DNA of 64,000 bases from the NCBI GenBank assembly GCA_963924565.1, contig OZ004614.1, positions 18,228,001 through 18,292,000 of the forward strand, read 5' to 3'. The position numbers were made by a program, and so were the translations under genes. The DNA is from Ascidiella aspersa. Lineage: Eukaryota. Below are positions 1 to 59,914 of the stretch, one piece after another (the stretch's first letter is position 1; the number at the start of each line of letters is the position of its first letter). The notes below the pieces were generated by a model. The model made no database searches and was not told the origin of the DNA. It saw only the letters and a program-made list of their open reading frames with translations.

Positions 1-2081
1 GTACTAACCAATCCCGAGATTGCCTAACTTCCGAGATCGGACGAGATCGGGTGCATTCAACCTGGTATGGTCGTAGACAGTATTGCTGAATATTTATTGG
101 TCTAAACTGTTTAAAAATGTAAAAATTTAAAAGAATCATATTTTGCCTACGACAATTCGTATTCCTATGCGGTCACACATCCAAGTACTATCCAATCCTG
201 AGGTTGCCTAACTTCCGAGATCGGACAAGATCGGGTGCATTCAACCTGGAATGGTCGTAAACAGTATTGTTCAACATTTATTGGTCTAAACTGTTTAAAA
301 ATGTAAAAATTTAAAGGAATCATATTTCGCCTACGACAACTGGCATTCCTAGGCTGTCACTCATCCAAGTACCAACCAATCCCGAGTTTGCTTAACTTCC
401 GAGATCGGACAAGATAGGGTTTATTCAACCTGGTATGGTTGCAGGCAGAATTGGTTAACATTTTTCTGTCTAAACTATTTAAAAAGTAAACATTTAAATT
501 AATTTAAAAAATCATAGTTGCCTACGACAATTCGTATTCCTAGGCGGTCACCCAACCAAGTACTAACAAATCCCGAGGTTGCTTAACTTACGAGATCGGG
601 TGCATTCAACCTGGAATGGTCGTAGACATTATTGTTCAACATTTTTTGGTATAAACTATTTAAAAATGTAAAAATTTAAAGGAATCATATTTGGCCTACG
701 ACAATTCGTATTAATAGGCGGTCACACCCCCAAGCACTATCCAATCCTGAGGTTGCCTAACTTCCAAGATCGGACGAGATCGGGTGCATTCAACCTGGAA
801 TGTTCGTAGACAGTATTGTTCAACATTTATTGGTCTAAAGTGTTTAAACATGTATAAATTTGAAGGAATCATATTTCGCCTACGACAATTCGTTTTAGTA
901 GGCGGTCACATATACAAGTACTATGCAATCCTGGGGTTGCCTAACTTCCGAGATCGGACGAGATCGGGTGCATTTAACCTTGAATGGTCGTAGAGAGTAT
1001 TGTTCAATATTTATTGGTCTAAACTGTTTGAAAATGTAGAAATTTAAAGGAATCATATTTTGCCTACGACAATTCGTATTAATAGGCGGTCGCACATCCA
1101 AGTACTATCCAATCCTGAGATTGCCTAACTTCCGAGATCGGACGAGATCGGGTGCATTCAACCTTGAATGGTCGTCGACAGTATTGTTCAACATTTATTG
1201 GTCTAAACTGTTTAAAATTGTAAAAATTTCAAGGAATTATATTTTGCTTACGACAATTGGTATTCCTATGCGGTCACCCATCCAAGTACTAACCAATCCC
1301 GTGGTTGCTTAACTTCCGAGTTCGTTCGGACAAGATTGGGTGCACTCAACCTGGTATCGGGTGCATTCAACCTGGTATGGTTGTAGACAGAATTGGTTAG
1401 CATTTTTTGGTCTAACAATTAAAAAAGGTAAGCATTGATATAAATTGAAAAAATTATGTTTTGCCTACGACAATTCGTATTCCTACGCGGTCACCCATCC
1501 AAGTGCTAACCAATCCCGAGATTGCCTAACATCCGAAATCGGACAAGTTAGGGTGAATTCAACCTGGTATGGTTGTAGGCAGAATTGGTTAGCATTTTTT
1601 GGTCTAACAATTAAAAAAGGTAAGCATTGATATAAATTGAAAAAATTATGTTTTGCCTACGACAATTCGTATTCCTACGCGGTCACCCATCAAAGTACTA
1701 ACCAATCCCGAAATTGCCTAACTTCCGAGATCGGATGCATTCAACCTGGTATGGTCGTAGACAGTATTGTTTAACATTTATTGGTCTAAACTGTTTATAA
1801 ATGAAAACATTTTAAGGTTTAATGTTTTACAAACGACAATTCGTATTCCTACGCGGTCACACATCCAAGTACTATCCAATCCTGAGGTTGCCTAACTTCC
1901 GAGGTCGGACAAGATCGGGTGCATTCAACCTGGTATGGTTGTAGGCAGAATCGGTTAGCATTTGTTGGTCTCACAATTTAAAAATGTAAGCATTGAAATT
2001 AATTAAAAAAATCATATCGTGCCTACGAAAATTCGTATTCCTACTCCGTCACCCATCCAAGTACTAACCAATCCCGAGATT
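1..2081 (-). rRNA. 5S: Tandem array of ~12 divergent 5S rRNA-like units (~118-bp gene + ~66-75-bp AT-rich spacer, period ~184-192 bp); many probably pseudogenes
   Basis: Reverse complement of e.g. 145-262 reads GTTTACGACCATTCCAGGTTGAATGCACCCGATCTTGTCCGATCTCGGAAGTTAGGCAACC...TAGTACTTGGATG(G/T)GTGACCGC..GGAATAC..GTCGTAGGC, which follows the 5S consensus including the internal control region. Units lie at ~145-262, 329-446, 520-627, 694-811, 878-995, 1062-1179, 1246-1389, 1463-1580, 1655-1762, 1829-1946, with truncated ones at 1-78 and 2021-2081. Copies differ by substitutions and 10-25-bp indels. Confidence 0.85.
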
Positions 2082-2480
2082 ATACGATATTTTGGCCCTA
2101 AATAAAACACACACTGCACGAGACTTACAACAACATATATTTTTTTCTAAAACAAATACAATGATAATCGCACACACAAAACAAATCCCCAAAAAGGTGA
2201 CATTACTCTAATTAAAAACTGGCGTCCGATTTCATTGTTAAACACCAAATACAATAAAAGTAAAACTATAGCTAACAGACTAACAAACAAATAAAAAAAC
2301 GAAATTTCCTGCTTACAGAGAGATGTGGCTTACCCAATCGCCAACTCCAAGAAATACATTACAATATATCATCGGTAATTGAACATAGCAAAGAAAGAAA
2401 CTCCCCCCTTGCAATTATGTTAACAGGCTTTGTATACAAGGCTAACATCTAGTTTTTCCTTTTTTTTTTTTTATCTTATA

Positions 2481-2574
2481 TATTATACTCAGGTGTGCAA
2501 CTGAACCCTTATTGGGTCCAGTGCTACGTAGATTATTTTTAATCTCATGCGGTTGGATCATCATTCGTATAATA
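2481..2574 (-). ncRNA. Box C/D (kink-turn)-like structured RNA module at the 3' end of element 1
   Basis: Minus strand reads TATTATAC-GA-ATGATGA ... CTGA-GTATAATA: an 8-bp terminal stem with box C and box D, and internal hairpins AGATTA/TAATCT and CTGGACCC/GGGTTCAG. It ends ~8 nt before poly(A). Confidence 0.6.
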
Positions 2575-2702
2575 CATCTTCGGCCGAAACCGGTGCCGTA
2601 AGGTGGCGCAAAAGAGTAAGAGTAAGTAATTGGTAATTTTGTAGTACATCTTCGGCCGAAACCGGTGCCGTAAGGTGGAGCAAAAGAGTAAGAGTAAGTA
2701 AA
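2572..2702. repeat. ~72-bp tandem duplication in element 1 3'UTR
   Basis: TACATCTTCGGCCGAAACCGGTGCCGTAAGGTGG.GCAAAAGAGTAAGAGTAAGTAA occurs twice (~2573 and ~2645). Confidence 0.85.
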
Positions 2703-2738: not shown

Positions 2739-5700
2739 TTACAGAGAGGGGAGCGCAGCAACGCCAACCGTCTCTTGGTCCATGAGATTTGTGTTTAAAA
2801 GTTCTGTTAGTTTTTCTAATCCTATTTTTATTTTTAGGTCCGAAGTAAAGGTTTGGAATTTGGATATGATTTCATCGGTAAGATTAATTATAAATTGGTT
2901 TTTATCCGTAGCATATTCATTTCTAGTTTCCAAAATAGTTTTGAATTTAATTATTGTTGTTTTTATGATTTGGAGGATTTTTAAATTTACGAAATTATTT
3001 TGGAAGCCTAATGAATTTTGATTAAAAAGGAGTGCATCCTCGTTTGGCAGGAAACTTTGATTAAAGTTTTGAGTTGTAAATAAATTTAAATTTTGAATTA
3101 TACTTTTAGTTATTTCGCAATCTAAAATTAAATGTTTGATGTTATCTTTTGTTGGATTGACAGAAGTTACAATTACGTTTGATTAATTGTCCTGTTTTGT
3201 TTTGATAGATTTGATGGATGGCGTTTTTGAAAGTCTCCCCAGCAGAAGGCACCTTGGGATATACGATAGGCAATTTGTCTTTCGTTGTTTGTGAATAGGT
3301 CTTTTGTTTTCGGTGTTTTGAAGAGTAGGGCTAGCCAGTTGATGTTTTGGTTGGAGTCTGTGAGTTTATGAATGTTTTTTGTTGCTGTAATTTGGTTTAG
3401 TGTCTGGTATAAATTTTTAAGTTTGGAGTTTTCCCAATCAAATTCTGGGTCATGGAGGTTAAGTTTATCGTATTGTGTTAATATATATTTCCATTTTGGG
3501 TTGGGTTCTAAGCGTTTTGGGTAGTTATTACTAAAGAGGTTGTTATTGATTCTTCTTATTTTAAATCCAATTTGGTAAAGCATCCAGTCATGAAAGATCT
3601 GGTTTGTTTCGCTAATATTTTTGATATATTTTATTCTTTCTAGTTGGGCTGCATTTATTTTATTACGTATGTTTATCATCTTAAGTCCGCCTTCTTTGTA
3701 GTCAGATTGTAGTTTAGTTCGGCTAAGGGGTTCTATTTTGAGTGGGGTCCATAAAAATTGATTTGCGACATGTTGTAAATATTTTATTGTTGTGTTGTCG
3801 GGGATAATTATTCGCGCTAGGTGTATTATTTTGGATACAATTAGGGAATTTATGATATTTATTTTGCCAAACATGGTTAAATTTAGGTGTTCGTATTGTT
3901 TTATTATATTTGTGATTTTGCCTTTTGCTGCGTTCCAGTTGATTGCGTTATTATTATTTGTTTCATTATAGATAATTCCTAGTATTTTGATTTGTTCGGT
4001 AAAGTATTGGTTGTAGTTAGCAAGTAAAAGCGATTTAAAATCTTGGACAAGCGTTAGTATTTTGTTTTTGTTTTTGTTTAATGTTTGGCCTGTAATTTTT
4101 TCATAATTGTCAAGTTCTATAAAAAGGTGTTTGATTGAATTTTGGTCTGATATGAAAAAGGTATTATTGTCGGCGTATTGTTGCATTTTAATTGTGTTTT
4201 TTCTAATTTTGATACCTTTGAATTCCGGATTGTTTTGGATTAATTCAGCTAACACTTGTCCAAGGCAAATATATAAAATCATTGATAGAGAACAGCCCTG
4301 ACGGACCCCTTGTTTTATGCTTATATTGTTTGAATTTTTGCCGTTAATTTCAATTTTACTGCTAATGTTTCGGTAGAGTATGGTGACCCATTTTATTGTA
4401 AATTGGTCGACTTTGAATTTTTTTAGAATTTGTTGAATTAGGTGGTGGTCCGCTTTGTCGAATGCTTTTTCAAAGTCTGTTACTAAGAGTGCCAATTTGT
4501 TATTTTTATCTTTACTATGTTCTATTGCCGAATTGATATTGTAATGAATTTCTTGCATTTGCCTATTTGTTACGCCGCATTTTTGTGATGTGTCAATTTT
4601 GTCGTCGAGTTGTGGCCTCAGTCTATTGGTAATAATTTTATTTAAAATTTTTTAATCAGTGTTTAGCAATGAAATGGGTCTCCAGTTTTTTATGTAATTA
4701 AGGTCGCCTTTTTTTGGTATTAGTTTTGTTATAGCCAATTTCATATTATTTGTCATTTCTTTTTTTAAATAAATGTTCGCGTATAATTCAATTAGGTCGT
4801 CCATTAGATAATTTTGAAATTTTTTGTAAAATTCGCTAGTAAGTCCGTCAGAGCCGGGGGATGAATTATTGTTTAAAGAGCTTATGGCTAGAATTATTTC
4901 TTGTTTATTTATGATAGAGGGAGGTTCTATGTTTTGGTCAAGGGATTTGCTTGCGCTTTTATTTCCTATTTTTTCTAGAATTTGATTTTGTTTGGTGCGG
5001 TCTATTTTATTTTCCGTTCCCCATAATTTGGTGTAAAATTGATGTATTATTTTTTCAATGTGATTTGGGTTGTTCGTAATTTGGCCGTTTTCATTTTTTA
5101 ATTGATAGATACCTGTTTTGAGTTGGTTTTTTTGTTCTAATGTGAAAAATTCTTTGTTTGGTTTTTCTCCATTTCCTATGTGTTTTATCCTAGAGCGTAT
5201 TTTTTGTCCTTCTAGTTTTTCCGTTTCAATAGATTTGAGTTTTTCAATTGTTTCTTTATATTGTTTATTTATGGTTAGGTCGTTTGCGGTTAGGGATTCT
5301 GTTAGAAGTTTTAGTTTTTGTTTTAGGGTTTTTTCAAGTTTTCGTTTTTGATTATTTTTGTATTGCGCATATTTTATTGTATGATTTTTTATTCGTTTTT
5401 TTAAATTTTCCCACCATATAAGTTTATTTGGTTCGGTATTTTCAAATTGATATTCTCTTATTAATTTTATTATCGAATCGCAGTAATATTTTTCGTCTAA
5501 CAATGAGTAGTTGTTTATTTTCCAGAATGATTTTCCCTGTCTGCGTGCTTTACCAAGTTGGATGATGAGGAATGGGGTTTTGAGTGGTCGGAAAAAGTGA
5601 CGGGTATGTAATGTGAGTTTTTTTGTTTGTTTATTATAGATTGTGTCGCATAAATTCTATCTATTCTAGTGGCAGATTTTGCTGTGACAAAGGAAAATTC

Positions 5701-8351: not shown

Positions 8352-8424
8352 TTGTTGGTTGAGCGGGGAATCGAACCCGGGATCTTCGGCTTTACGAGCC
8401 GGCGTTTTAACCGTTAGACTACCT
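8352..8424 (-). other. tRNA-like unit directly after the element 2 ORF2 stop codon
   Basis: Minus strand GGTAGTCTAACGGTTAAAACGCCGGCTCGTAAAGCCGAAGATCCCGGGTTCGATTCCCCG: A box, anticodon-like stem CGGC/GCCG with a 7-nt loop, and T-arm GTTCGA. Confidence 0.6.
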
Positions 8425-11400: not shown

Positions 11401-11926
11401 TGTTTGTTGTTTTGGGATTGGTTGTATCGCTGTCGTTCTCAACAAAATTAAAGTCACCTAATATGATAATGTCTTTGTTTCGTTCTTGTTGCTGTAAGTG
11501 ATGATGTAATTGATTTATTTCGTGTGTTCTTTGTACTATTTGGGAATTTGCTTGACCGGATTTGAGGTAGACATTAATTATGTGTATTTTTTGGCGTTGG
11601 GTGTTGTCGTTTTTCTTTGTTATTGTGATTTCTTGTATTCTGTTTTGTATTATTATGTTGTGTTCAATTGTCCAATTTTGCATTAAGTTTTCTTTGTAAA
11701 TGATCGCGGTTCCGTGCCAGAAGTGTTTTTGCTGTTGGTCTGTTTGTGAGTTAAGCTCACATTTTAAATGTTCTTTTTTAAGCCAATTTTTGAGGACGTG
11801 TTCGTTTAGTTTATGTGTTTCCTGTATGGCGATGATGTTTATGTTGTGTTTGTTTATAAAGGTTCCTAGTTGGTTTAGCTTGTGTTGTATGCCGTTAATG
11901 TTAAGTGTGCAGAGTTTTAGCTCCAT
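8423..11926 (-). CDS. Element 2 ORF2: APE endonuclease, reverse transcriptase, C-terminal CCHC zinc finger
   Basis: 1167-aa ORF with TLNING, QETH, GDFN, RIDR, SDH, PGIDG, DFEKAFD, GLRQGCPLS, YADD and CNFC..HLLNEC. Confidence 0.95.
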   Translation of the reverse strand: MELKLCTLNINGIQHKLNQLGTFINKHNINIIAIQETHKLNEHVLKNWLKKEHLKCELNSQTDQQQKHFWHGTAIIYKENLMQNWTIEHNIIIQNRIQEITITKKNDNTQRQKIHIINVYLKSGQANSQIVQRTHEINQLHHHLQQQERNKDIIILGDFNFVENDSDTTNPKTTNTKDNKQWQETKKAYNLCDSFRQKHPNSKVYTRVTATVATRIDRIYNKATNKLIINKAHHIPHTISDHTQAPYITIQITTTKQHGKTFWKLNNEILNDLEYKTHITKTIQNIQTQKNEFTHFTEWWEHLKKKIKKDTITYAIETKKRENKEEDDLNEQLKTLNTNLNTNTKKINKEYLHTIEKLKTIEQHRINGAKVRARIKLETENEKPDRQFLQLEKKQQEKSTIKHIKDETGKIIKTSEGIKQEIFTFYHKLWGREDNLNKTEQGIILNTEGQETPDDNEESQYITLSELTSTIKDLNRNSTPGIDGLTTEFYITFWEQLKHDIQELYMNIYMNKNMSQSMKIAITKLLPKKGPQNLLKNWRPIFLLTTEYKLLTKIITKKLKTRIKDKINTDQKCGFKGRRIEEIHYNINAIIQYAKQKSQELAIITTDFEKAFDHVNHELIFKTLKYFGLPKTLINWIQIIYHDIKSKIEVNGQTTEEILIKRGLRQGCPLSMILYTCIGEILNKLIKKNKKITSFKLTTTKIQIQQYADDNTFFITDKQSATELFKEMKKYEEITGQKLNMAKTQIIAFTPFIKNQLSELYPTHMKEEIKILGIWYNGKNDVMKINWIKAKKKIQSIQHQYATLNLSIYGKTQIIKSLMIAQLLHIARIIRPTKQIIKEINKILYDYLWNPKKIEPMKRLKLINKKEQGGIRMVDLESKIAAAQLEQIKFLYNTTKATQPYHAWAMFQLGTKGKNIIPHLFGNHYPKASQPNETWMYIIKKFNEIQETNKDFDWKNNTMRAVYNELVVKRAIKTEITMGRDQINWTHIHLTNKEHKLIFNNMERETSYLTAHKAFKWGDFRKSRGITTTSNGQQRINRCNFCHENSDNIYHLLNECKITKQIYHKLNSFTTNEYHHTFLPDKFATMYNQSPTQFENNTTNQKLLILTKYKIISEKNKLTAANEYLDDPQSFTNSITWKIKVKFKRQMDATPNNNTSKLQNRPTTSQT

Positions 11927-17181: not shown

Positions 17182-17984
17182 ATGGAGAGGCTAGCAGAAA
17201 CAACGGGTCGGACCGGCGAAGGAGGCAGGCGGTCGGTCGGTGGAAAACGAAAAGAAACAGTTGGTGTTGTGCGGCCCCGAGACAGCCTTAGCTAGGCGGG
17301 CAGCACGTTACGTTAGTCAATTAGGAAAAAACAGAAAAGCTGATTTTGCAATTTGCCAACAGGCAGGCAGGCAAACACATTATTGAGAATGAGTTTTGTT
17401 TCTTTTCGGTGGTTCAGTTTCGGCAGTCTCAGTTAAGGGCTTGTTGCCGGGCTCGAACAGCAGCAAAAACTGTTCTAAAGGCGGTCCCTTGGCTGACTGC
17501 CTGTGCTTAGGCGACAAATCGCAGGGCTTTGATTTTTCGGGTACACGGTCTCGGTGTGACCCAGCCTCGAAAGCAATATCACCGGGTAGTCTTGGGAGGC
17601 CCAAATCGATCGCGCGTTGGCGTTTTGGCAACTGAACACCTCGAAAAGGGCAGTCGTTCAGCTAAAGCCGAACGTTTCGAGCGTTGCTGACGACGGTGTG
17701 TCCTACTCAGCGACTTGATAGTCGACGGGTGCGCGCTACAGGACCTCAGGCGCTGGTAGACAAAATTTGAAGCGCCACCTCGGTCGGGCAGCCAGGCAAG
17801 CGAGCCTCTTGCTAAAATCAAAAGCACACCAAAGTGCAAGCAGTCGGCAGCAAACCTTTTCGGCATTTCACCGATTTCGCTTTGGTACGCAAACCACGTA
17901 CAAATGGCCAGCGTGTGCTGTGTCGTCATAAATCCTTTATTGTTGATTCGTTCGTCGAAGAGAAGTAGGAAAGAAATCGTCAAA

Positions 17985-18590
17985 ATGTCAGGAGGCGCAG
18001 GAGATAGCAGCAAGCCGAAAGCCAAGAAGGCATCGCCGACCCAGGCGACTCATCCCACCTACCAGGTGATGGTCACCGCCGCCATTACACAGCTTAAAGA
18101 AAGAAACGGCTCGTCCCGACAGAAGATTGTCAAGTACGTCAAGGACAACTACAAGGTCAGCGACAACTTCAACGTACCCTTGAAAACCTGCATCAGGCGC
18201 CTTATCAAAAGTGGGCAGCTCGTGCAGGTCAAGGGAACTGGTGCTTCGGGCTCTTTCAAGCTCGCCAAGACCGACAAGAAGCCGGTCAAAAAAGAGGCCA
18301 AAAAGAAGCCAGTTGCCGCCAAAAAGCCGGCAGCCAAGAAAGCCGTCGCGGCTAAAAAGCCAGCTTCCGCCTCGGCTAAGAAGACCACCGCCAAAAAGGC
18401 CGCCGCCGCCGCCGCGAAAAAACCCGCCGCAAAGAAGTCGCCCAAAAAGCCGGCTGCCAAAAAAGCGCCGGCAAAGAAATCGACGACGGCCAAAAAGCCG
18501 TCGCCCAAAAAGGCGGTCAAGGCAAAGAAGCCAGCAGCAAAGAAGCAGGCCAAGAAGCCAGCTGCCAAAAAGGCTGCCACTAAAAAGTAA
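17985..18590 (+). CDS. H1: Histone H1 (201 aa)
   Basis: Globular domain [26 protein letters not shown] plus K/A/P-rich tail. True ATG at 17985 in AAAATG context; 3' stem-loop follows. Confidence 0.97.
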
Positions 18591-41956: not shown

Positions 41957-42531
41957 ACCAAGCTAGATCACTCTCACCCCACACCCTCCACCCTAGTTCC
42001 CGCCCGACTCCCTTTCTGTCCATTATTGTTTTCATTTCTTAACTTCTAATCTACCAATACAGAGAAACCAACGATTTCAGAGAGGTAAAAGTAACCATCG
42101 CCGCCATTTTGTTTTTAGAGACGCCATTTTGTTTTTCCGACGGCCATTTTGTTTTGTGATTAAGGCCCTTTTTAACTGAAATTGACAATTTCAAAGTGTG
42201 TCCCTACCCTCTGCAACCACAAAAGCATATCCTCGAAAGAGGGGAGCGAGAAATAAACCCAGAAATATCTTTTTTCCTACTCGTTGTTGTTTTTCCTTTT
42301 CCTTTCGTGCCAACATGCATACTCCCCTTGTAGGAGGAGTAAAGGCCTCTTATTTGTTTTTATTTTAGTTTTGTCACTGCTTAACGGTTTACACATCCCC
42401 TGCAGTCATGACACCAGCGTGCTGCACCCAGTTTCCCCTGTTATTTTTCGCCATACTTTTCGCCGTCCGCTACCAAAATTACACACTGCTCGTTGTTCAC
42501 ATCCGAAACGAATATCAATAAATAACCAATA

Positions 42532-42609
42532 AGGGCAATGATGAGCCCAAACCAAAGGGGGGCCCTAGCAAATTGCTAGCCCCAAAAACCCTGAGGTCAC
42601 TGAGCCCTC
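42532..42609 (+). ncRNA. Box C/D kink-turn-like module at the family A 3' end (A1)
   Basis: AGGGC-A-ATGATGA ... CTGA-GCCCT directly before poly(A). Confidence 0.7.
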
Positions 42610-42615
42610 AAAAAA

Positions 42616-42681
<66 letters not shown>

Positions 42682-42691
42682 AATCGTCAAA

Positions 42692-43294
42692 ATGTCAGGA
42701 GGCGCAGGAGATAGCAGCAAGCCGAAAGCCAAGAAGGCATCGCCGACCCAGGCGACTCATCCCACCTACCAGGTGATGGTCACCGCCGCCATTACACAGC
42801 TTAAAGAAAGAAACGGCTCGTCCCGACAGAAGATTGTCAAGTACGTCAAGGACAACTACAAGGTCAGCGACAACTTCAACGTACCCTTAAAAACCTGCAT
42901 CAGGCGCCTTATCAAAAGTGGGCAGCTCGTGCAGGTCAAGGGAACTGGTGCTTCGGGCTCTTTCAAGCTCGCCAAGACCGACAAGAAGCCGGTCAAAAAA
43001 GAGGCCAAAAAGAAGCCAGTTGCCGCCAAAAAGCCGGCAGCCAAGAAAGCCGCCGCGGCTAAAAAGCCAGCTTCCGCCTCGGCTAAGAAGACCACCGCCA
43101 AAAAGGCCGCCGCCGCCGCGAAAAAACCCGCCGCAAAGAAGTCGCCCAAAAAGCCGGCTGCCAAAAAAGCGCCGGCAAAGAAATCGACGACGGCCAAAAA
43201 GCCGTCGCCCAAAAAGGCGGTCAAGGCAAAGAAGCCAGCAGCAAAGAAGCAGGCCAAGAAGCCAGCTGCCAAAAAGGCTGCCACTAAAAAGTAA
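42692..43294 (+). CDS. H1: Histone H1 (200 aa), separated from its promoter by A1
   Basis: Intact CDS, one Ala shorter than units 1-4; only ~15 nt of native leader remain. Confidence 0.93.
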
Positions 43295-46265: not shown

Positions 46266-47797
46266 ATTTCGGTTTGCTTGTCAGCTGAACCAAAAAACGG
46301 CTCTTTTCAGAGCCACCCATAACTTTGAAAGAGACAAACCCGATCGCTTTGCAAAAGGCTGCATTTTGTGTGTTTTGCTAATCGTATTGTTGCTCTTTTC
46401 ATTCCCACATTAGTCAACGAGCGATTGATTTACTGTAAGTTCGAAATAGGTGGAATCGAGCCCAAACTGAGAAAAGTTGGGCCCGAAAGCTTTCAAGTGC
46501 TAAACTATTTTCTAACTAAAATTATATTTCAAAAAAAACAAAACAAAAAAACAATGACGTTCTGGCACTTGTTGAGAAATGTAGGTAGGGTAGGGTAGGA
46601 TGGAGAGGCTAGCAGAAACAACGGGTCGGACCGGCGAAGGAGGCAGGCGGTCGGTCGGTGGAAAACGAAAAGAAACAGTTGGTGTTGTGCGGCCCCGAGA
46701 CAGCCTTAGCTAGGCGGGCAGCACGTTACGTTAGTCAATTAGGAAAAAACAGAAAAGCTGATTTTGCAATTTGCCAACAGGCAGGCAGGCAAACACATTA
46801 TTGAGAATGAGTTTTGTTTCTTTTCGGTGGTTCAGTTTCGGCAGTCTCAGTTAAGGGCTTGTTGCCTGGCTCGAACAGCAGCAAAAACTGTTCTAAAGGC
46901 GGTCCCTTGGCTGACTGCCTGTGCTTAGGCGACAAATCGCAGGGCTTTAATTTTTCGTGTACACGGTCTCGGTGTGACCCAGCCTCGAAAGCAATATCAC
47001 CGGGTAGTCTTGGGAGGCCCAAATCGATCGCGCGTTGGCGTTTTGGCAACTGAACACCTCGAAAAGGGCAGTCGTTCAGCTAAAGCCGAACGTTTCGAGC
47101 GTTGCTGACGACGGTGTGTCCTACTCAGCGACTTGATAGTCGACGGGTGCGCGCTACAGGACCTCAGGCGCTGGTAGACAAAATTTGAAGCGCCACCTCG
47201 GTCGGGCAGCCAGGCAAGCGAGCCTCTTGCTAAAATCAAAAGCACACCAAAGTGCAAGCAGTCGGCAGCAAACCTTTTCGGCATTTCACCGATTTCGCTT
47301 TGGTACGCAAACCACGTACAAATGGCCAGCGTGTGCTGTGTCGTCATAAATCCTTTATTGTTTCTTCGTTGTCGAAGAGAAGTTGATTGAATTAGCAAGC
47401 AAATTGCCATTTAGAAGGGATTGTCTATCCCTGGGATTGTCTATCCCTGCGCTTAAGCTTTGCTTGACAACCAGACAACTGAACATATTTATACTGTCAG
47501 ACAGTCGCAAATTACATCTGCGACTTATTTTGCTGCTACCAAGTCGGGTAGTGAAAAGTTAGTTCTGCGTAAAGACGCAACTTGGATTACTCTCGCCATC
47601 TGCAACCAACTTGGAATTGGATTAGCGCGGCTGCGCCATCAACCCTGCAACCAGGTGTGAACTTTCTTATTTCCTGAGTAACATTGCTATATAAACTGCC
47701 CTACCGGCCAACTGACAAGCCGCCATTTTGTCAAACCTGGCACTTCGGGAAATTTTTTGAAATTCTGCGGGAAATTTAGATTCCGTACCTCGCCGAA

Positions 47798-49081
47798 ATG
47801 GCCCCTACCACGAGTTGTCCTTTAACGGAAGCTGAACTCAAAAGCCTGATTAATTTCGATCGTTCTACAGAGGTAGAAGCTCAGTTTACCCCAGCCCACT
47901 CTCGCCCCGCCATTTATGACCTTCTGGCTCACCTTCGCTTTAAGTTTACCAACCTAGAGGGGCTGACACAACTTCCTAATGGTCGAGTGCAATTCGTTTG
48001 CACGACCAAAGAAAAAGCTGTAGAGCTAGCTAACCTCCTAAGACCCCATGCACGCTATGCAGAAACATTTAATCCAGATACGATAAAAGTCCGTCTCAGC
48101 TACGTGCCAATAAGACTCTCTGACAAGGCCTTAGCCCGGATATTCTCCGCAAAATTCGCGACGTGCCTCCGATCAAGAGAGATGCGCGACTCCTATGGTT
48201 ATAAGAACGGCAAACGTGAACTAACAGTGGTCAATTCTGAAATTATGCAAAGCCCCCTTCCGAAAGAGGCATGGATAGGTCCATTCAAAATAGGAATCCA
48301 CTACGATGGTCAACCCCCATTTTGCAAATACTGCAAAGCACAGGACCACGAGGTGGAGCATTGCACAAAATTAAAAGAGAAAAAGAAGCAAATTAAAGAA
48401 AAAGAAATACTAGATAAAAAAATAGCATCAAACATCCATCCTAACCATAACCAATTCAATCAGGACCCAATATTTAGTGCCATATTAGAAAACATGGACA
48501 TCTTCCCCAACCTGGCAGGACCCACAACCTCTAATATTTTCCTTGCGGGAACTAGACCCGAAAACCATACCAAAACTACCAGTACCCCCCAACCCGGAAC
48601 CATCCCCCCACCTGCCCACACGATTGTCCAATCCCAACCAGCAGTGACCGACAAAGTTGAACCTCACCACGATGACAACATCAATCGCATCGTCCCGATT
48701 CACATGAATATCCCCTCAGACTTAGAGTCGGACGAACACGAAGATGAAGACGACCTTGAAGAAGCCGACAACCACAACGAGAATGGAAATAAATGCGAGT
48801 CGAAAGACTTGCAGGAATTTCGAAAAGAAAAGCAACCAGAAGACCGCCCACCACCTCCCCCCAAACCCACACCTTCTTACGCATACCCCGGACTCCCAAA
48901 ACCATCCATTGTTGACCCTGCAAAAAGAGATAGATCGGGTGACTCAACTCCCGACCGTAAACCCAAAAACCCCAAAACCCAAAACACCATCTATGAATGC
49001 CCCCAATGTTTTACGTCCTTTATTGATGACATACAAAATTGTGACTGCGTCATACCCACACTCCCAGATTCCACAATCTAA
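47798..49081 (+). CDS. Family A ORF1, copy A2
   Basis: 427 aa, nearly identical to A1 ORF1. Confidence 0.9.
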   Translation: MAPTTSCPLTEAELKSLINFDRSTEVEAQFTPAHSRPAIYDLLAHLRFKFTNLEGLTQLPNGRVQFVCTTKEKAVELANLLRPHARYAETFNPDTIKVRLSYVPIRLSDKALARIFSAKFATCLRSREMRDSYGYKNGKRELTVVNSEIMQSPLPKEAWIGPFKIGIHYDGQPPFCKYCKAQDHEVEHCTKLKEKKKQIKEKEILDKKIASNIHPNHNQFNQDPIFSAILENMDIFPNLAGPTTSNIFLAGTRPENHTKTTSTPQPGTIPPPAHTIVQSQPAVTDKVEPHHDDNINRIVPIHMNIPSDLESDEHEDEDDLEEADNHNENGNKCESKDLQEFRKEKQPEDRPPPPPKPTPSYAYPGLPKPSIVDPAKRDRSGDSTPDRKPKNPKTQNTIYECPQCFTSFIDDIQNCDCVIPTLPDSTI

Positions 49082-49209
49082 CCCCCTCCCCCCCCCGCCC
49101 ATCCTTGTCGTTGATATATCCTTATTTATTGTTTGTGTAACTTAAATTTAGTAACTGTAGCCTATAACTGTTGTTTTATTGTAATCATGCAACTACCGTA
49201 AAATGTAGA

Positions 49210-52200
49210 ATGCCCGCATACCTAAAAGTCATAACGCTAAACGTCGCGGGCATACACAACCCCCGTCGACGTTTAGCCATTTTCGAACTCCTAAAGTCCA
49301 CTCGAGCAGATATAATCCTGCTTCAAGAGACCCACTCCACCCCACAGGACGAGGCCACCTGGGCCCACGAGTGGACCCCCGGCCCCGCCCTTTTTAACTC
49401 CGCCCCCTCCGGAGGCTCTGCCTCTAAGGGAGTAGCCATCTTGTTTAACTCCCCCACCTTCACCCCAACAAACGTCTTCTCTGACTTAACCGGCAGAACC
49501 TTATCATGTGACATCACCAACTTGGACCCAACTATCCACATAACTAACATATACGCCCCATCCGGCAATAGAACCGCAAACACCAAATTCTTTGAAAATC
49601 TATACCCATACCTCACCTCCCCAAACCCGATAGTTTTTGCAGGAGACTTCAATTCTGTTTTACAACCCCACTTGGACATTTACCCCCCAAAATCAGCCCG
49701 CCATATAAACAAATCTCTAGCCACACTCATCGCCACAATACAATTAATTGACCCCTATAGAACTGCAAACCCTGACACCCAAATTTTTACAAGAAGACAA
49801 ACGAACACACAATCACGCATAGATCGATTCTACATCTCGTCAGATATCATAGCCACCAACTATTCAGTTACCCCTTTTTCCCTCTCCGATCATGACCAGG
49901 TCCTAATAACCATTAATATACCCATACGCCCCCCAACAGGCCACGGCCTTTGGAGAAATAACATCCAAACTCTGAAACACCAAGATTTCAAAACCAAACT
50001 TCAAGTTAAACTCCACTGGCTAACGACATTAAAACACGACTTTGACCCGCTCAGTTTCTGGACCCTAATAAAGGAAAGAGCTGCTACCCTCCATAAAATA
50101 GTACATAAAGAGAACAACATAACTAACTCCCGGGAAATAACCCAGAAACATTTGGACTTAGCCAAATTAAGGGAGGAAATGAATCCCAATAACTACCAGC
50201 AAACCCTTGTTAAGTTCCAGAATCTCAAGCGTGAATTAAACAAACATTATATATCAAAAGCACGATACGATCTGTTAAAAGCAAAAGCAAACTTAATAGA
50301 AAACAAAAACCTCTCTACCAAAACCCTCTACAAACTAGTGCTACCTAAAAAACATTCCAGTCACATTAAAGAACTACTAGACGAAAATTCATTACCGTAT
50401 GACACCCCCGTTGAACTATGCAACATCGCGAAAAAATTCTACGGAGAACTTTATGCACCATCACCCCCCACATACCACCACCTAAACCACTTTACCGATA
50501 ACCATATACCCATTCCAGACCAGTTAAACACGGCACTAACCCAACCCATTACCCTTATAGAAATCCGACAAGCAATTAAAGCCTTTCCATCTGGTAAGAC
50601 CCCCGGGCCCGATGGGCTAACTATCGAGTTCTACAACGAGTGCTGGGATTTAATCGGACCCCACCTCCTCCCCGCCCTCAACCATGCATACTTCTCCCCC
50701 TCTCTCCCTCCTACTTTCGTAGAAGGCGCAATAATACTAATCCCCAAAACCACAGATGCCAACACCCTCTCGAACTTCCGCCCCATCTCACTTTTAAATA
50801 CAGACCTTAAAATTCTTAACAAAATTCTCAACACCCGCATCAAACCCCATCTAAAACATTTTATTTCCCCCAACCAGCATGCCCAAACCAACAAAAATAC
50901 CTCCACCGCCTCCAACCTCCTCCGCGACCTATATCATTTCTCATCCCAGAGCGACACCCACTCCTTCTTCATATCGCTCGACTTCAAAAAAGCCTTTGAC
51001 TCCATAACCCATACCTGGCTCTCCCACTCCCTTATTTCCCGTAATTTCCCCCCGTGTTTTGTAAACTACCTGACCGCTACCCAAACCTCGGCTTCATCCC
51101 AAATTCTAATTAACGGTCACCCCTCCCAACCCGTGGCGATCAGGAGAGGAGTGAGACAAGGCGACCCGCTAAGTCTCACCCTCTTCCTGATCGCCCTCGA
51201 CCCTCTCCTCCAAAGTATCCAAAACAACCCCTCCATTGCCCCCTCCCCTGCTCCCATCCGAAACCCCCCTAAATTTATAGCATATGCAGACGACGTCACC
51301 CTCACCCTTGCGCACCACCAATCCCTGCCTGCCTTATTTGACACCTTATCTAAATTTCACGACACCTCTGGCCTCTCCCGCAATCCCCTTAAAACCAAAG
51401 CCACTTACAACCGCTCCCTCCCCCCGCCCTTTCTAAATATCCCCACCATAAATTGGAACCCCCTAGCCATATTTCCCCTCAACATACCAATTGGCGACCC
51501 CACCCAAATTACCCAAGCATGGAACACAGCATACACCGAATTTGTAAACAAGACCTCACTAATCAAACACCCCTTTCTCACTTTTGACACTAAATCTATT
51601 CTATCCAAAACCCTGCTTCTCCCTCACTTCTCCCAACTAGCCCACGTCTACTCCCCCCCGGACCGCATCAAAAACAAAATAAACAAGAAAATGTGCCAAT
51701 TCATCACCGGTCCCCGCAACCCCACCATCCCATTGGACAAGCTCGCGGCCAGCCGCCCACACGGAGGCTACTCCATTGCCAACATTCCCCTCTATTCGGA
51801 CCTTTTTCTTATAAGACAAGTAGGCGCATACTTGCGACACCGCTTAGCTGACACCCCATCCGACACACAAACCCAAATAATCGAACACCAGCTAGGTATT
51901 CCATTGGCCCGAAAATACGAGCTCCGTTTCAAAAATACACTCCCCCATACCATTTTCCCTTCCCCACACTATAAGCAAATCTGGAACATCATTTTAAAAT
52001 ATAACCCGACCCTAACCGAAATAATATCCCCCAAAATAAAACCCTTATATCTCCGACTTACAACCCCACATCAGTACCTCCACCCCACCAACCAAAACCG
52101 AAATCCCCCCAACTGGCCACTCATACACCATTCCATGCTTCCCTCCTACCTTAAAACATTCAACTACAAACTGGCATCAAATGCAATCCCTGTCAAATGC

Positions 52201-52638
52201 CACACAGTCCCAAATATTCCGTCACTCCAACCAAACTGCCTCCTTTGCCACACACGCTATGAGTCGGATGTCCATCTTTTTCATGAATGCCCACAAATAC
52301 AACCCCTCCTAAATCATGTCAGATACATACACACCGCCTTCACATCCCACCAAACAGATTTCTTCAATCACCACTCCCACATCACATTCACCACACCCCT
52401 TCAAACCCCCTTCCCAAACAACAACCTAATAACCCTTCTCAACACTGTCTTACACCATACTATATGGAAAACCAGAATTAAAAAAGCCATATTAGAAACC
52501 CCTGACCCAAACCCCACTCCGCCGCAAAAACTGATAACATCCTTCAATCAATCAATACGTATGAAATATAGAATCGAACAAGCAAAAACTACTCCAACAT
52601 ATATTGATCTATTCGAAAAGTTAATCACTTTACTATAA
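49210..52638 (+). CDS. Family A ORF2: APE endonuclease + RT + CCHC zinc finger (1142 aa from ATG 49210)
   Basis: TLNVAG, QETH, NIYAP, GDFN, RIDRF, SDH, PGPDG, FRPISLLN, LDFKKAFD, GVRQGDPLS, YADD, CLLC-x8-H-x4-C. Confidence 0.96.
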   Translation: MPAYLKVITLNVAGIHNPRRRLAIFELLKSTRADIILLQETHSTPQDEATWAHEWTPGPALFNSAPSGGSASKGVAILFNSPTFTPTNVFSDLTGRTLSCDITNLDPTIHITNIYAPSGNRTANTKFFENLYPYLTSPNPIVFAGDFNSVLQPHLDIYPPKSARHINKSLATLIATIQLIDPYRTANPDTQIFTRRQTNTQSRIDRFYISSDIIATNYSVTPFSLSDHDQVLITINIPIRPPTGHGLWRNNIQTLKHQDFKTKLQVKLHWLTTLKHDFDPLSFWTLIKERAATLHKIVHKENNITNSREITQKHLDLAKLREEMNPNNYQQTLVKFQNLKRELNKHYISKARYDLLKAKANLIENKNLSTKTLYKLVLPKKHSSHIKELLDENSLPYDTPVELCNIAKKFYGELYAPSPPTYHHLNHFTDNHIPIPDQLNTALTQPITLIEIRQAIKAFPSGKTPGPDGLTIEFYNECWDLIGPHLLPALNHAYFSPSLPPTFVEGAIILIPKTTDANTLSNFRPISLLNTDLKILNKILNTRIKPHLKHFISPNQHAQTNKNTSTASNLLRDLYHFSSQSDTHSFFISLDFKKAFDSITHTWLSHSLISRNFPPCFVNYLTATQTSASSQILINGHPSQPVAIRRGVRQGDPLSLTLFLIALDPLLQSIQNNPSIAPSPAPIRNPPKFIAYADDVTLTLAHHQSLPALFDTLSKFHDTSGLSRNPLKTKATYNRSLPPPFLNIPTINWNPLAIFPLNIPIGDPTQITQAWNTAYTEFVNKTSLIKHPFLTFDTKSILSKTLLLPHFSQLAHVYSPPDRIKNKINKKMCQFITGPRNPTIPLDKLAASRPHGGYSIANIPLYSDLFLIRQVGAYLRHRLADTPSDTQTQIIEHQLGIPLARKYELRFKNTLPHTIFPSPHYKQIWNIILKYNPTLTEIISPKIKPLYLRLTTPHQYLHPTNQNRNPPNWPLIHHSMLPSYLKTFNYKLASNAIPVKCHTVPNIPSLQPNCLLCHTRYESDVHLFHECPQIQPLLNHVRYIHTAFTSHQTDFFNHHSHITFTTPLQTPFPNNNLITLLNTVLHHTIWKTRIKKAILETPDPNPTPPQKLITSFNQSIRMKYRIEQAKTTPTYIDLFEKLITLL

Positions 52639-53213
52639 ACCAAGCTAGATCACTCTCACCCCACACCCTCCACCCTAGTTCCCGCCCGACTCCCTTTCTG
52701 TCCATTATTGTTTTCATTTCTTAACTTCTAATCTACCAATACAGAGAAACCAACGATTTCAGAGAGGTAAAAGTAACCATCGCCGCCATTTTGTTTTTAG
52801 AGACGCCATTTTGTTTTTCCGACGGCCATTTTGTTTTGTGATTAAGGCCCTTTTTAACTGAAATTGACAATTTCAAAGTGTGTCCCTACCCTCTGCAACC
52901 ACAAAAGCATATCCTCGAAAGAGGGGAGCAAGAAATAAACCCAGAAATATCTTTTTTCCTACTCGTTGTTGTTTTTCCTTTTCCTTTCGTGCCAACATGC
53001 ATACTCCCCTTGTAGGAGGAGTAAAGGCCTCTTATTTGTTTTTATTTTAGTTTTGTCACTGCTTAACGGTTTACACATCCCCTGCAGTCATGACACCAGC
53101 GTGCTGCACCCAGTTTCCCCTGTTATTTTTCGCCATACTTTTCGCCGTCCGCTACCAAAATTACACACTGCTCGTTGTTCACATCCGAAACGAATATCAA
53201 TAAATAACCAATA

Positions 53214-53291
53214 AGGGCAATGATGAGCCCAAACCAAAGGGGGGCCCTAGCAAATTGCTAGCCCCAAAAACCCTGAGGTCACTGAGCCCTC
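53214..53291 (+). ncRNA. Box C/D kink-turn-like module at the family A 3' end (A2)
   Basis: Identical to 42532-42609. Confidence 0.7.
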
Positions 53292-53300
53292 AAAAAAAAG

Positions 53301-53342
<42 letters not shown>

Positions 53343-56116: not shown

Positions 56117-59100
56117 ATGACTACTTACCTCAGTGTTGTCACACTGAACGTCGCCGGTCTACGTGACCGGCACAAACGTTCAGTCGTTTTTAACCTGTTA
56201 AAAAATACAAAATTCGATATTTTCATGTTACAGGAGACCCACTCTACCCCCCAGACTGAGTCAGTCTGGGCGCAAGAATGGGCCTCCGGCCATGCAATTT
56301 TTAACTCTGCCCCCCATGGAGGAAGCTACTCCAGAGGCGTTGCAATTCTCTTTAATTTTTACCACCCTTCCCCAAAAAACATATTTTCGGATTTAACCGG
56401 CCAAACGATTTCTTGTGACCTCCCTACCCTTACACACACCCTTCACTTAGTCAACATCTACGCCCCGTCTGGAAAACAGAAAGTAATACAAAATAGAAAT
56501 TTCTTTAACAACCTGTACTCATACTTGTCCTCCCCGTACCCCATAATGCTAGGTGGCGACTTTAACTGTGTCCTACAGCCAGACTTGGATAAATTCCCCA
56601 CCAAACAACATACCACACGTAATCACACCCTTGTAAACCTAACTCAAACGTTTGACCTGAAAGACAGCTACAGAATAACCAACCCTTTCACCAAAACCTA
56701 TACCCGCAGATCCCACAATACACAATCCCGACTCGACAGATTTTACATCTCCCCAAAAATTAACCCCCAAAACCACATTTTCACTCCTGTACCCTTTTCC
56801 GACCATGACATGTTCACCATTTTACTTGATATCCCCCTCTCCCCTCCCAGAGGATATGGCCTCTGGAAGAACAACAATACCACGCTCACAAACTCCAAAT
56901 TTAAATCCACTCTGGCACAAAAATACAAAAAATGGGAAACATTAAAACCCGATTACGACCCTCTTAATTTCTGGATTTTGGTAAAAGGAAAAATTGCCCT
57001 ACTCCACAAAAGAATTTATAAGAGCATAAGCTGCAATAAAAACCAGGAACTAGCCCGCAAACATTCGGAACTTTCTAAATTAAGAGAACAAATGAATTCT
57101 CATAACTTCCCGCAATCCTTTGCCAATTTCCAGAAATTAAAAAAGGAACTCAACCAATATTACACGCAGAAATCAAGAGAAGACCTCCTAAAGGCAAAAG
57201 CCAACGACATCGAAACACGGAACTACTCGGACAAAACCTTATACAAACATGTTTTACAAAAAAGAAAGCAAACACACATAACAGAAATTCTAGACGAATA
57301 TCATCTCCCTCATACAACCCCAACCGAACTTTGTAACTTAACCCACCAATATTACCAAGATTTGTATAGCCCCAGCCCTTCCCCACAAATTACATCTGAC
57401 CCCTTTGACTTTAACCATTCGAGCATACCAGACAAACTAAATCACATCTTAACCCTCCCCATACAACAACACGAAGTAAAATCAATTTTAAAAACATTTC
57501 AAACCTGCAAAACCCCCGGGCCCGATGGACTCAGCATTGAGTTCTACACCCAATGCTGGGAACAGATCGGCCCTGATCTCACCAAAGCCCTAAATACGGC
57601 CTATTTTTCAAACCGTTTACCTCCCGAGTTCACAGCCGGTGCTCTGACCTTAATACCCAAAACTGACAACGCCAACAATCTAAACAACTACCGCCCCATA
57701 TCATTGTTAAACACCGACCTAAAAATACTGGATAAAATTCTCAATTCCCGCATAAAACCCCACCTACATCATTTTATCTCCCCCAACCAACACGCCCAAC
57801 CAGGAAAAACAACCGCATCGGCGGCAATTCTCCTGCGCGACCTGCACCAACACGCCACCCAACAACCTCCCCCGTCATACTTCATAGCATTAGACTTCAA
57901 GAAAGCATTCGACTCGATTAGCTACCCCTGGATCCTCCATACTCTAAACAAAAGAAATTTTCCCCACAGCTTTATAAACTACATAAATGCATGCCAGGAC
58001 TCAGCAAATTCCAAAGTTTTAGTCAATGGTCACCCCACGGAAAACTTCGCAATCGGAAGAGGGGTGAGGCAGGGAGACCCCCTTAGCCTCACGCTTTTCC
58101 TGATCGCCCTGGACCCTCTCTTAAAAAACATTTCTGAAAACCCACAGATAACCCCATCCCCTTCCCCCGCCCGAATTTCACCGAAATTTATTGCTTACGC
58201 TGACGATATAACTCTAACTATTTCAAAGACAAGCTCCCTCCCACCTCTTTTTGACACGTTAAAACTTTTCGAACTAATATCCGGTCTGTCCCTAAACCCT
58301 AACAAAACTAAAGCCACCTTTACCCAAAATCCCCCACCACCCATTGAATCCCTTCCAATGATAACCTGGAACCCCCTCGGCATCTCCCCTTTAAACATTC
58401 CTATTGGCAACCCAAATCAAATTAAAAACCTTTGGCAAGAAGCATACGAAAAATTCAAGCACAAAATAACCCAACTCGCCCGCCCCTCTCTGACCCTGGA
58501 TTTTAAAGCAGTAATAACCAAAACTCTCCTACTCCCAAACTTTTCTTACCTGGCCAACGTCTACCCAATCCCCAACACCCTTCGACAAAAAATAAATAAT
58601 CAGATAACACGTTTTATTGCAGGCCCCCGTGCACCCATGCTCCCTATTGAAACACTCGCGGCCGCGCGCTTAAATGGAGGTTACGCGGTTGCCAACATTC
58701 CCCTCTACACAGATCTATACTTAACCAGACAGATAGGAGAGTACATCACACACCGCTTGACAGATACCCCATCGAACATACAACTTCAAATAATCGAATA
58801 CAACATTGGCATACAACTCTCAAACATGTATAATTTGCGACTTAGGAACACCTTACCTCACACACCCTTCCCATCCCCACATTATAAAAGAATCCTGGAA
58901 AGATTACGAAAATACACCCCAACAGAAACAGAAATATCGTGTCCAAAAATCCGCCCTTTATACTTACGTCTCACCACCCCACACCGATACAGTCACCCAC
59001 GCCCTAATGACAACCCCCCAAACTGGAACTTAGTACATCACAAAATGCTCCCATCATACCTGCGCAGCTTTAACTTCAAACTAGCCCACAACATTCTCCC

Positions 59101-59542
59101 GGTAAAATCCACACATATACCCAATAACCCAGCCTTGGACCCAAACTGTTATCTTTGCCATTCTAGGTACGAGACCAATATTCATTTATTTCACGACTGC
59201 CAGCAGATCGAACCCCTTAAAACCCACGTGAAGCATTTATATACCCAGATAACAGGAGACGCAACAACCTTTTTCGACCAATCCCCTCATATTACCTTTG
59301 TCACCCCACCCCAAACCCCACTACCCAACAACGACTTAATCACCATCCTCAACACAGTTTTACACCACACAATTTGGAAAATACGAATCAAAAAAGCAAT
59401 AGATCAAACCCCGGCCCCATTCCCCACCCGAGCCTTAATCACCTTCTTCAACAGGTCAATAAAAATTCGCCATAAAATTGAAAACGCACGAGAAAACCCA
59501 CAACATATATTAATGTACCAAAAAATAGTAAAACTTATATAA
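56117..59542 (+). CDS. Family B ORF2: APE + RT + CCHC zinc finger (1141 aa)
   Basis: All catalytic motifs intact (QETH, GDFN, SDH, YADD); colinear with family A ORF2. Confidence 0.96.
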   Translation: MTTYLSVVTLNVAGLRDRHKRSVVFNLLKNTKFDIFMLQETHSTPQTESVWAQEWASGHAIFNSAPHGGSYSRGVAILFNFYHPSPKNIFSDLTGQTISCDLPTLTHTLHLVNIYAPSGKQKVIQNRNFFNNLYSYLSSPYPIMLGGDFNCVLQPDLDKFPTKQHTTRNHTLVNLTQTFDLKDSYRITNPFTKTYTRRSHNTQSRLDRFYISPKINPQNHIFTPVPFSDHDMFTILLDIPLSPPRGYGLWKNNNTTLTNSKFKSTLAQKYKKWETLKPDYDPLNFWILVKGKIALLHKRIYKSISCNKNQELARKHSELSKLREQMNSHNFPQSFANFQKLKKELNQYYTQKSREDLLKAKANDIETRNYSDKTLYKHVLQKRKQTHITEILDEYHLPHTTPTELCNLTHQYYQDLYSPSPSPQITSDPFDFNHSSIPDKLNHILTLPIQQHEVKSILKTFQTCKTPGPDGLSIEFYTQCWEQIGPDLTKALNTAYFSNRLPPEFTAGALTLIPKTDNANNLNNYRPISLLNTDLKILDKILNSRIKPHLHHFISPNQHAQPGKTTASAAILLRDLHQHATQQPPPSYFIALDFKKAFDSISYPWILHTLNKRNFPHSFINYINACQDSANSKVLVNGHPTENFAIGRGVRQGDPLSLTLFLIALDPLLKNISENPQITPSPSPARISPKFIAYADDITLTISKTSSLPPLFDTLKLFELISGLSLNPNKTKATFTQNPPPPIESLPMITWNPLGISPLNIPIGNPNQIKNLWQEAYEKFKHKITQLARPSLTLDFKAVITKTLLLPNFSYLANVYPIPNTLRQKINNQITRFIAGPRAPMLPIETLAAARLNGGYAVANIPLYTDLYLTRQIGEYITHRLTDTPSNIQLQIIEYNIGIQLSNMYNLRLRNTLPHTPFPSPHYKRILERLRKYTPTETEISCPKIRPLYLRLTTPHRYSHPRPNDNPPNWNLVHHKMLPSYLRSFNFKLAHNILPVKSTHIPNNPALDPNCYLCHSRYETNIHLFHDCQQIEPLKTHVKHLYTQITGDATTFFDQSPHITFVTPPQTPLPNNDLITILNTVLHHTIWKIRIKKAIDQTPAPFPTRALITFFNRSIKIRHKIENARENPQHILMYQKIVKLI

Positions 59543-59783: not shown

Positions 59784-59850
59784 AGGGCAATGATGCTCCC
59801 CTACCCCGGGAGGTGTCATATTGGCACCACAAAACCCCCGAGGGTCCTGA

Positions 59851-59856
<6 letters not shown>
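59784..59856 (+). ncRNA. Box C/D kink-turn-like module at the family B 3' end
   Basis: AGGGC-A-ATGATGC ... CTGA-GCCCT directly before poly(A). Confidence 0.65.

Positions 59857-59914
<58 letters not shown>

Follow-up and report, generated by a model that had tools for sequence, protein, structure and literature searches.

How do the LINE-type retrotransposons lodged among the histone repeats of this locus end their RNA, and is the conserved segment in front of their poly(A) tails the box C/D kink-turn of small nucleolar RNAs (snoRNAs) that the initial annotation read in it? The window, by which we mean the whole stretch of 64,000 nucleotides that was analysed, carries a 5S rRNA gene array at 1-1946 (minus strand, Rfam) and, starting at 18.6 kb, numerous histone 3' stem-loops (Rfam), and the LINE-type elements are placed between the 5S array and the histone stem-loops as well as within the histone repeats. 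Their ORF2s encode an APE endonuclease and a reverse transcriptase, to which a zf-RVT domain is added in families A and B. Among named proteins, they come closest to a pol-like protein of the ascidian Phallusia mammillata (45% identity), and the host is therefore probably a tunicate. The two copies of family A reach their 3' ends at 42609 and 53291 and the single copy of family B at 59856, and the minus strand holds element 1a and the decayed element 1b, whose ORF2 is in fragments extending down to 3173 (Table 1). Family A is inserted in an H1 leader, 12 nt upstream of the H1 ATG (42680-42694), and the same H1-leader site is occupied in other histone repeats by a B-like family (L017, L022). 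Because the first ~20 nt of family A are a diverged copy of the displaced H1 leader (36683-36720 against 17943-17985), family A is probably transcribed from the H1 promoter.

Direct reading of both family A copies confirmed the boxes and the terminal stem that had been annotated in front of the poly(A) tail. In copy 1, the 5' side is made of an outer A at 42532, GGGC at 42533-36, AAU at 42537-39 and GAUGA at 42540-44, and the 3' side of CUGA at 42600-03, GCCCU at 42604-08 and a spacer C at 42609. These segments give a helix AGGGC/GCCCU, a bulge AAU, the box C sequence AUGAUGA and, within an interior of 55 nt between GAUGA and CUGA, a central hairpin at 42565-42579. Family B proved to have the same ends, with helix, bulge and box D as in A and with GAUGC replacing GAUGA (box C AUGAUGC), as had been described; its interior of 50 nt aligns to that of A in patches only and holds a central hairpin GGUGUCA/UGGCACC. 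The remainder of the two 3'UTRs is indeed unalignable (best blastn E 0.2). Within the A/B group, the outer helix pair is A-U, G-U or C-G, one array family has an internal G-U, and the variant B' (L092) has the terminal helix CGGGC/GCCCG.

Table 1. Coordinates in the window of the ORF2s, terminal modules, poly(A) signal and poly(A) tails.
Feature	Position	Strand	Evidence or remark
Type C module, element 1b	2478..2577	-	direct reading; fold z -3.06; generic detector
C-terminal ORF2 fragment, element 1b (type C)	3173..4558	-	~26% identity to family A ORF2
ORF2 of element 1a	8423-11926	-	
AAUAAA poly(A) signal, family A copy 1	42517..42522	+	ends 9 nt before terminal helix
Module, family A copy 1	42532..42609	+	direct reading; covariance model, 105.7 bits; generic detector
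Poly(A) tail, family A copy 1	42610..42679	+	70 nt, one C; adjoins H1 leader
ORF2 of family A copy 2 (APE, RT, zf-RVT)	49171..52638	+	domain search
Module, family A copy 2	53214..53291	+	identical to copy 1; 106.4 bits
Poly(A) tail, family A copy 2	53292-53340	+	A-runs of both copies 49-70 nt
ORF2 of family B	56117..59542	+	57% identity to family A ORF2
Module, family B	59784..59856	+	82.3 bits; direct reading
Poly(A) tail, family B	59857-59913	+	

Contigs and DNA reads of other samples, compared over 47320-53299, break at 53215 and at 53244, with other UTRs upstream and other central hairpins downstream of the breaks, which shows independently that the first 29 nt of the module are common to several families. 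A fossil form of the A-type module, without the last hairpin and the 3' helix strand and with CUGA and a short A-run at its end, was observed in L093, L095, L097, L107 and L114 (C7:25.39-25.59 Mb, C8:26.2 Mb, C9:20.4 Mb and C2:23.9 Mb). The same flank follows every one of these copies, which indicates that the fossil form now belongs to another repeat unit. Two copies with a mutated box D, L034 and L048, were rejected as proof that this box is dispensable, both being segmental duplicates with common flanks.

The position of the poly(A) signal agrees with what had been claimed, in that AAUAAA lies on the far side of the module from the tail in A, B and D. In A, its end is separated by 9 nt from the helix and by 93 nt from the tail; in B, it runs directly up to the helix (0 nt), 79 nt from the tail. 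Of the 33 copies with intact ends, 26 have an A[AT]TAAA whose end falls 0-15 nt short of the helix; the type D signal stands 29 nt before the helix, and no AAUAAA was found upstream of the type C module of element 1b. The tail starts 0-6 nt past the helix, behind a spacer that is family-specific (none, C, CG, GT, AG, CAGT and others). A folded domain that bridges AAUAAA and a distant poly(A) site is found in the Rex-responsive element of HTLV-1. The module is like this element in placing a fold between signal and cleavage site, with the bridging here judged from the distances, and unlike it in that the Rex element is viral and has a different fold.

A third version of the module had been reported in element 1. 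It is present on the minus strand of element 1b (2577-2478), but its bulge is of 4 nt and not of 3 nt. In this type C module, an 11-bp A/U-rich helix (2577-2567 with 2488-2478) and the bulge GAAU are followed by GAUGA at 2562-2558, two interior hairpins, CUGA at 2492-2489, a spacer AAGAU (5 nt) beyond the helix and a tail at 2472-2460. The low identity of the element 1b ORF2 to that of family A (Table 1) places type C in a deep branch. A direct repeat of ~60 nt was also seen in the 3'UTR of element 1b, just 5' of the module (2720-2590, minus strand).

Types D and D' were found by a genome search with the element 1b ORF2, after which the sequence downstream of the relatives was read. Type D (L170; ORF2 64% identical to that of 1b) has the helix GGCAUAGAUA/UAUCUAUGCC, the bulge AAAU, GAUGA and CUGA, and then an AG spacer and a 23-nt tail, while type D' (L182) has the helix GCAUAGUUA/UAACUAUGC, the bulge AUAU, GAUGA and CUGA, and a tail without spacer; the two helices differ by one compensatory exchange, from A-U to U-A. 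The terminal helices of C, D and D' are 9-11 bp long and wholly unlike that of A/B in sequence, their interiors differ too, their tails begin 0-5 nt past the helix, and their minimum-energy folds include the terminal helix (z -2.7 to -3.8). Throughout the five helix versions (A/B, B', C, D and D'), AUGAUG(A/C) and CUGA remain constant, as do the direct contact of the boxes with the helix and the closeness of the tail; what differs between the versions is the sequence of the helix, the interior and the proteins.

A short variant in L186 (~718-772, plus strand; G000:C2:6614807-6614861) has a 10-bp terminal helix, AUGAUGA and a 23-nt interior, with CUCA in place of CUGA and a 14-nt spacer before a 23-nt tail, and could be a decayed copy or a variant without box D. 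Directly 5' of the terminal helix, C, D, D' and L186 have in common a small hairpin of the form CCGG...CCG(G)AAG (window 2600-2578, minus strand; L170 266-248, minus strand), which suggests that these modules are homologous and that the conserved unit may reach slightly upstream. Element 1a, the sister element in the window, ends in AAUAAA and a tail without a module, and other relatives of element 1b end differently, some of them in a T-arm-like segment. The module is thus restricted to certain lineages, and the clade as such can do without it.

The spread of the module was assessed in the 308-Mb genome. The exact A/B pattern gave 24 matches, compared to 0 for a reversed control. A generic detector, defined as UGAUGN, CUGA 30-130 nt further on and a flanking helix of at least 5 bp, recovered all four window modules, each abutting a tail, with a background of ~0.75 matches per shuffled window, and a box C/D and helix motif within 20 nt of the end appeared in only 0-3 of 20,000 shuffles of the last 140 nt of the elements. 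The covariance model R1, built from 16 non-redundant variants, gave 125 matches at E<=10 in the same genome (~100 of them clearly significant), and 93 were aligned to the model. By their upstream 200 nt, the module copies form 51 groups, or ~50 unrelated 3'UTRs. Among copies with 1.5 kb of upstream sequence, the ORF2 remnants upstream shared 34-100% identity with family A or ~50-100% with family B. Some copies are 5'-truncated within the module, which indicates that reverse transcription started in the tail and passed through the module.

Because the alignment was fitted to the model, the pairing and double-change counts lean towards it: the model structure was paired in 81.9% of cells, compared to 31-54% with slid partners, and changes on both sides were seen in 66 cells, compared to 23 in shuffles. 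Most of the covariation was carried by the central hairpin. The annotated covariation of the interior hairpins therefore holds for the central hairpin, but the ACC/GGU mini-hairpin is not secure; when the invariant ACC after box C is paired instead with the same GGU, one long irregular hairpin results that scores 83.5%, and this long-range pairing fits the sequences at least as well as the mini-hairpin. RNAalifold, run on an unfitted MAFFT alignment, retained the terminal helix alone. In A and B, the constrained fold lies ~4.5-5.5 kcal/mol above the minimum in a nearest-neighbour model that ignores kink-turn energy. Together, these results demonstrate that the observation is real, in the sequence and position of the module, in the covariation of its helix around invariant boxes and in its spread over lineages, and that it is broader than first described.

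Like box C/D snoRNAs, the module has RUGAUGA near its 5' end (AUGAUGA in A, C, D and D'; AUGAUGC in B), CUGA near its 3' end (in A, B, B', C, D and D', with L186 as the single exception), a flanking helix, here of 5-11 bp in five sequences with compensatory changes, and the U.U and G-C pairs of stem II. It differs from them in lying within a 6-kb protein-coding, polyadenylated retrotransposon RNA, and in having an interior folded into hairpins, no C'/D' pair and no Rfam family. No second UGAUGA was found inside the module, and the occasional internal CUGA is in the wrong order and spacing for a C'/D' pair. The stretch before box D varies by type and lies in predicted helices, and a shared antisense guide therefore seems unlikely. 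A search of Rfam 15 gave no match to the module in the window at the gathering threshold or in L011 and L013 at E<=10, so that the possible derivation from a known snoRNA, which had been raised with the initial annotation, found no support even at that permissive threshold. Readings of the module as a ribozyme (hammerhead), a SECIS element or a known snoRNA are likewise unsupported, as no Rfam family matches it.

The kink-turn itself had been described as exactly canonical. The sequence fits this geometry in A, B and B' (AAU bulge, GA/GA), but in C, D and D' the helix stays in register only with a bulge of 4 nt, which is not standard kink-turn geometry. In every type, the stem II pairs U.U (3b.3n) and G-C (4b-4n) and the A and U of L2/L3 follow the snoRNA consensus, and a kink-turn by itself does not require these positions. 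At -1b/-1n, A, B and C have C-G and D has A-U, the two most frequent pairs there among human box C/D RNAs (C-G 65%, A-U 9%; PMC5579392). Since -1n is never C, the motif is not a GAC m6A site by the rule given in PMC5579392. Binding of 15.5K to the kink-turn is the first step of snoRNP assembly (PMC5579392), and stem II is required by later snoRNP proteins (Watkins 2002, as cited in PMC5579392). When metagenome contigs were scanned for the exact pattern, 39 matches were obtained, 0 of them LINE-like; many resemble ordinary snoRNAs and contain D' and C' boxes in their interior. Several contigs from unrelated metagenomes (L137/L148, L141, L164, L160 and L145/L157/L161/L166) hold RNAs of 70-95 nt with exact GGGC-AAUGAUG ... 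CUGA-GCCC termini and internal D'/C' boxes, which are presumably ordinary eukaryotic snoRNAs. The snoRNA-like character of the matches indicates that the LINE termini are those of apparently real snoRNAs. On balance, we do not class the module as a snoRNA, and read it from its sequence as an RNA element that would work like the terminal motif of one; as a structure, a putative snoRNA-type kink-turn closed by a covarying terminal stem and held under selection is well supported.

The module is related to two known kinds of RNA end, LINE 3' recognition structures and the ends of snoRNP-ended long RNAs. The 3' ends of LINEs choose the RNA that is copied by the reverse transcriptase, and to our knowledge few of the signals are understood and none is known that carries a host snoRNP motif. 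So-called stringent LINEs, such as eel UnaL2 and insect R2, have 3'-terminal recognition structures, and we know of none that was reported as a box C/D kink-turn. As in the stringent LINEs, the conserved structure described here stands directly before the tail and is common to related families with otherwise different UTRs (~50 UTR groups); unlike in them, a poly(A) tail is also present behind the module. For this kind of recognition, PMC4494074 cites Kajikawa and Okada 2002. In yeast hmsnoRNAs and in mammalian sno-lncRNAs and SPA-lncRNAs, the end of a long RNA is defined and protected by a snoRNP (PMC9351541; PMC10557570), as would likewise be the case here. These RNAs originate from host snoRNAs within introns when processing fails or takes an alternative route, and they carry no tail at the snoRNP end (PMC9351541; PMC10557570). 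In contrast, the LINE motif is encoded by the element and followed by a poly(A) tail that was copied into DNA. The H/ACA domain of vertebrate telomerase RNA serves stability, 3'-end formation and Cajal-body trafficking, and this RNA is also the partner of a reverse transcriptase with a snoRNA-type 3' domain, although it is of the H/ACA and not the C/D type, comes from a host gene and is not a messenger. A snoRNA joined to LINE-derived sequence and mobilised by LINEs is described for platypus snoRTE/PlatSINE1 and for snoRNA retrocopies (PMC7245038, citing Schmitz et al. 2008). According to the same source, snoRTE has a real snoRNA as the 5' head of a non-autonomous SINE, whereas here a snoRNA-like 3' end belongs to autonomous LINEs. 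Full-text literature searches yielded no account of a LINE whose 3' end carries a box C/D or kink-turn motif.

The reading we favour, with somewhat better than even confidence, is that the 75-105 nt before the tail form a selected cis-acting RNA structure, a kink-turn that would be bound by Snu13 and guide the 3' end. The terminal helix would close a kink-turn of box C (AUGAUGA) and box D (CUGA), with a lineage-specific hairpin domain inside. The module would fold on the element's own mRNA, host Snu13/15.5K would bind the kink-turn, possibly followed by further box C/D core proteins, and the folded RNP would bring AAUAAA, just 5' of the helix, to a cleavage site 0-6 nt 3' of the helix, at what the distances suggest would be normal spacing. 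With signal and cleavage site on opposite sides of the folded module, the whole module would always be kept in the transcript. The outcome would be a compact, nuclease-resistant RNP beside the tail, where the reverse transcriptase would start target-primed reverse transcription; in family A, the enzyme acting beside the module would be the ORF2 product. Binding of Snu13 or a snoRNP, an effect on the poly(A) site, recognition by the reverse transcriptase and routing to nuclear bodies are plausible predictions. The end could alternatively be made by trimming to the snoRNP boundary and then adenylation, as in snoRNA maturation (review PMC10557570). One RNA-seq run gave 22 sense reads over family A and 0 on the module, reads too few for 3'-end mapping and with tails made ambiguous by the genomic A-run.

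Other explanations place the same features differently. The module might serve for recognition by ORF2p or ORF1p of the element itself, in the manner of a stringent LINE, with the kink-turn a mere architectural bend that involves no host snoRNP protein. Its place directly before the tail is that of LINE RT-recognition elements, the A-type segments after box C and before box D are nearly invariant across families, the lineage-specific interior follows ORF2 divergence, and RRM-like or CCHC features of ORF1 could bind RNA. The predicted fold of family A ORF1, made without an alignment, is poor (pLDDT 43), with a hint of a beta-alpha-beta-beta-alpha-beta N-terminal domain, and this poor model gave no sign of an L7Ae-like fold. 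Recognition by the element's own proteins would, however, leave unexplained why the snoRNA-consensus U.U, G-C and L2/L3 positions are found in lineages whose ORF2s are ~26% identical, and why apparently real snoRNAs have termini that cannot be told apart from those of the module; moreover, no SINE-like partner with the module came up in an unsystematic look. We regard this explanation as rather unlikely. At the other extreme, the LINEs might encode a working snoRNP site, on which Snu13, Nop58/56 and fibrillarin would assemble into a cap that defines the RNA end and routes the complex via Cajal bodies or nucleoli, or retains it there, near its multicopy targets (histone, 5S and snRNA arrays). 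The intact stem II of all types, which Nop58/fibrillarin assembly requires (Watkins 2002, as cited in PMC5579392), would suit such mimicry, as would the residence of the window elements in histone and 5S arrays and the use of one site in the H1 leader by families A and L017. Yet there is a single K-turn and no C'/D' pair for a Nop56/Nop58 dimer, the RNA needs translation, which nuclear retention by a snoRNP would oppose, and many copies lie outside known multicopy genes, with one tRNA only found by Rfam in 20 flanks. Full snoRNP mimicry, including the routing to arrays, is in our view doubtful.

That the module is a functionless passenger, left over from a host snoRNA that a LINE 3' end once acquired by transduction or template switching, would fit termini equal to those of apparently real snoRNAs and the known capacity of LINE machinery to produce snoRNA retrocopies as well as SINEs headed by a snoRNA (PMC7245038, citing Schmitz 2008). 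A neutral remnant, however, would not hold its boxes invariant amid compensatory rewriting of the helix and replacement of the interior, a fixed distance to the tail in ~50 UTR groups is not expected of it, and no Rfam snoRNA is similar; this makes the passenger explanation very improbable. The idea that a conserved 3' hairpin resembles boxes C and D by mere chance deserves hardly any credence: the boxes are short and the detector has its background in shuffled windows, but the motif is nearly absent near the end of shuffled tails and occurs in five versions with different helices.

If the favoured Snu13-bound structure is true, it would offer a mutable handle (GA to CC, helix swaps) for testing end definition and RNP assembly on the RNA of a site-specific LINE. 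It would also link retrotransposons to snoRNP assembly, and possibly to the bodies beside histone, snRNA and 5S genes, provide a second reverse transcriptase RNA with a snoRNA-type domain after telomerase RNA, and suggest a route for the origin of snoRNA-like retrocopies and SINE heads.

Neither model R1 nor the generic detector picked up a module in a set of foreign ORF2 relatives, 33-36% identical and drawn from ENA, JGI and Logan contigs (L124-L127, L167-L169); this set was without the Phallusia mammillata relative (45%), and some of its contigs were without a clear 3' end. One of them, L126 (a Logan contig, ORF2 35% identical), stops 8 nt past AAUAAA (5170-5193), where the module would begin, and this end may be an assembly break at a shared repeat.

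Sister LINE lineages may end in different small-RNA-like modules, and LINE 3' ends would then, if the reading as a working snoRNP site is true as well, repeatedly copy identity modules of host small RNAs. Relatives of element 1b with 39-46% ORF2 identity carry a GGTTCGAATCC-type T-arm-like segment directly before the tail (L174, ~760-825, plus strand; L188, minus strand, just before the A-run; and L177). A tRNA identity of the L174, L177 and L188 tails was not called by ARAGORN or Rfam, and we describe them as T-arm-like only. In the window, the 3'UTR of element 1a contains a segment scored as tRNA by Rfam (33.7 bits; 8356-8428, minus strand) and a second T-arm-like piece at ~8290-8250 (minus strand).
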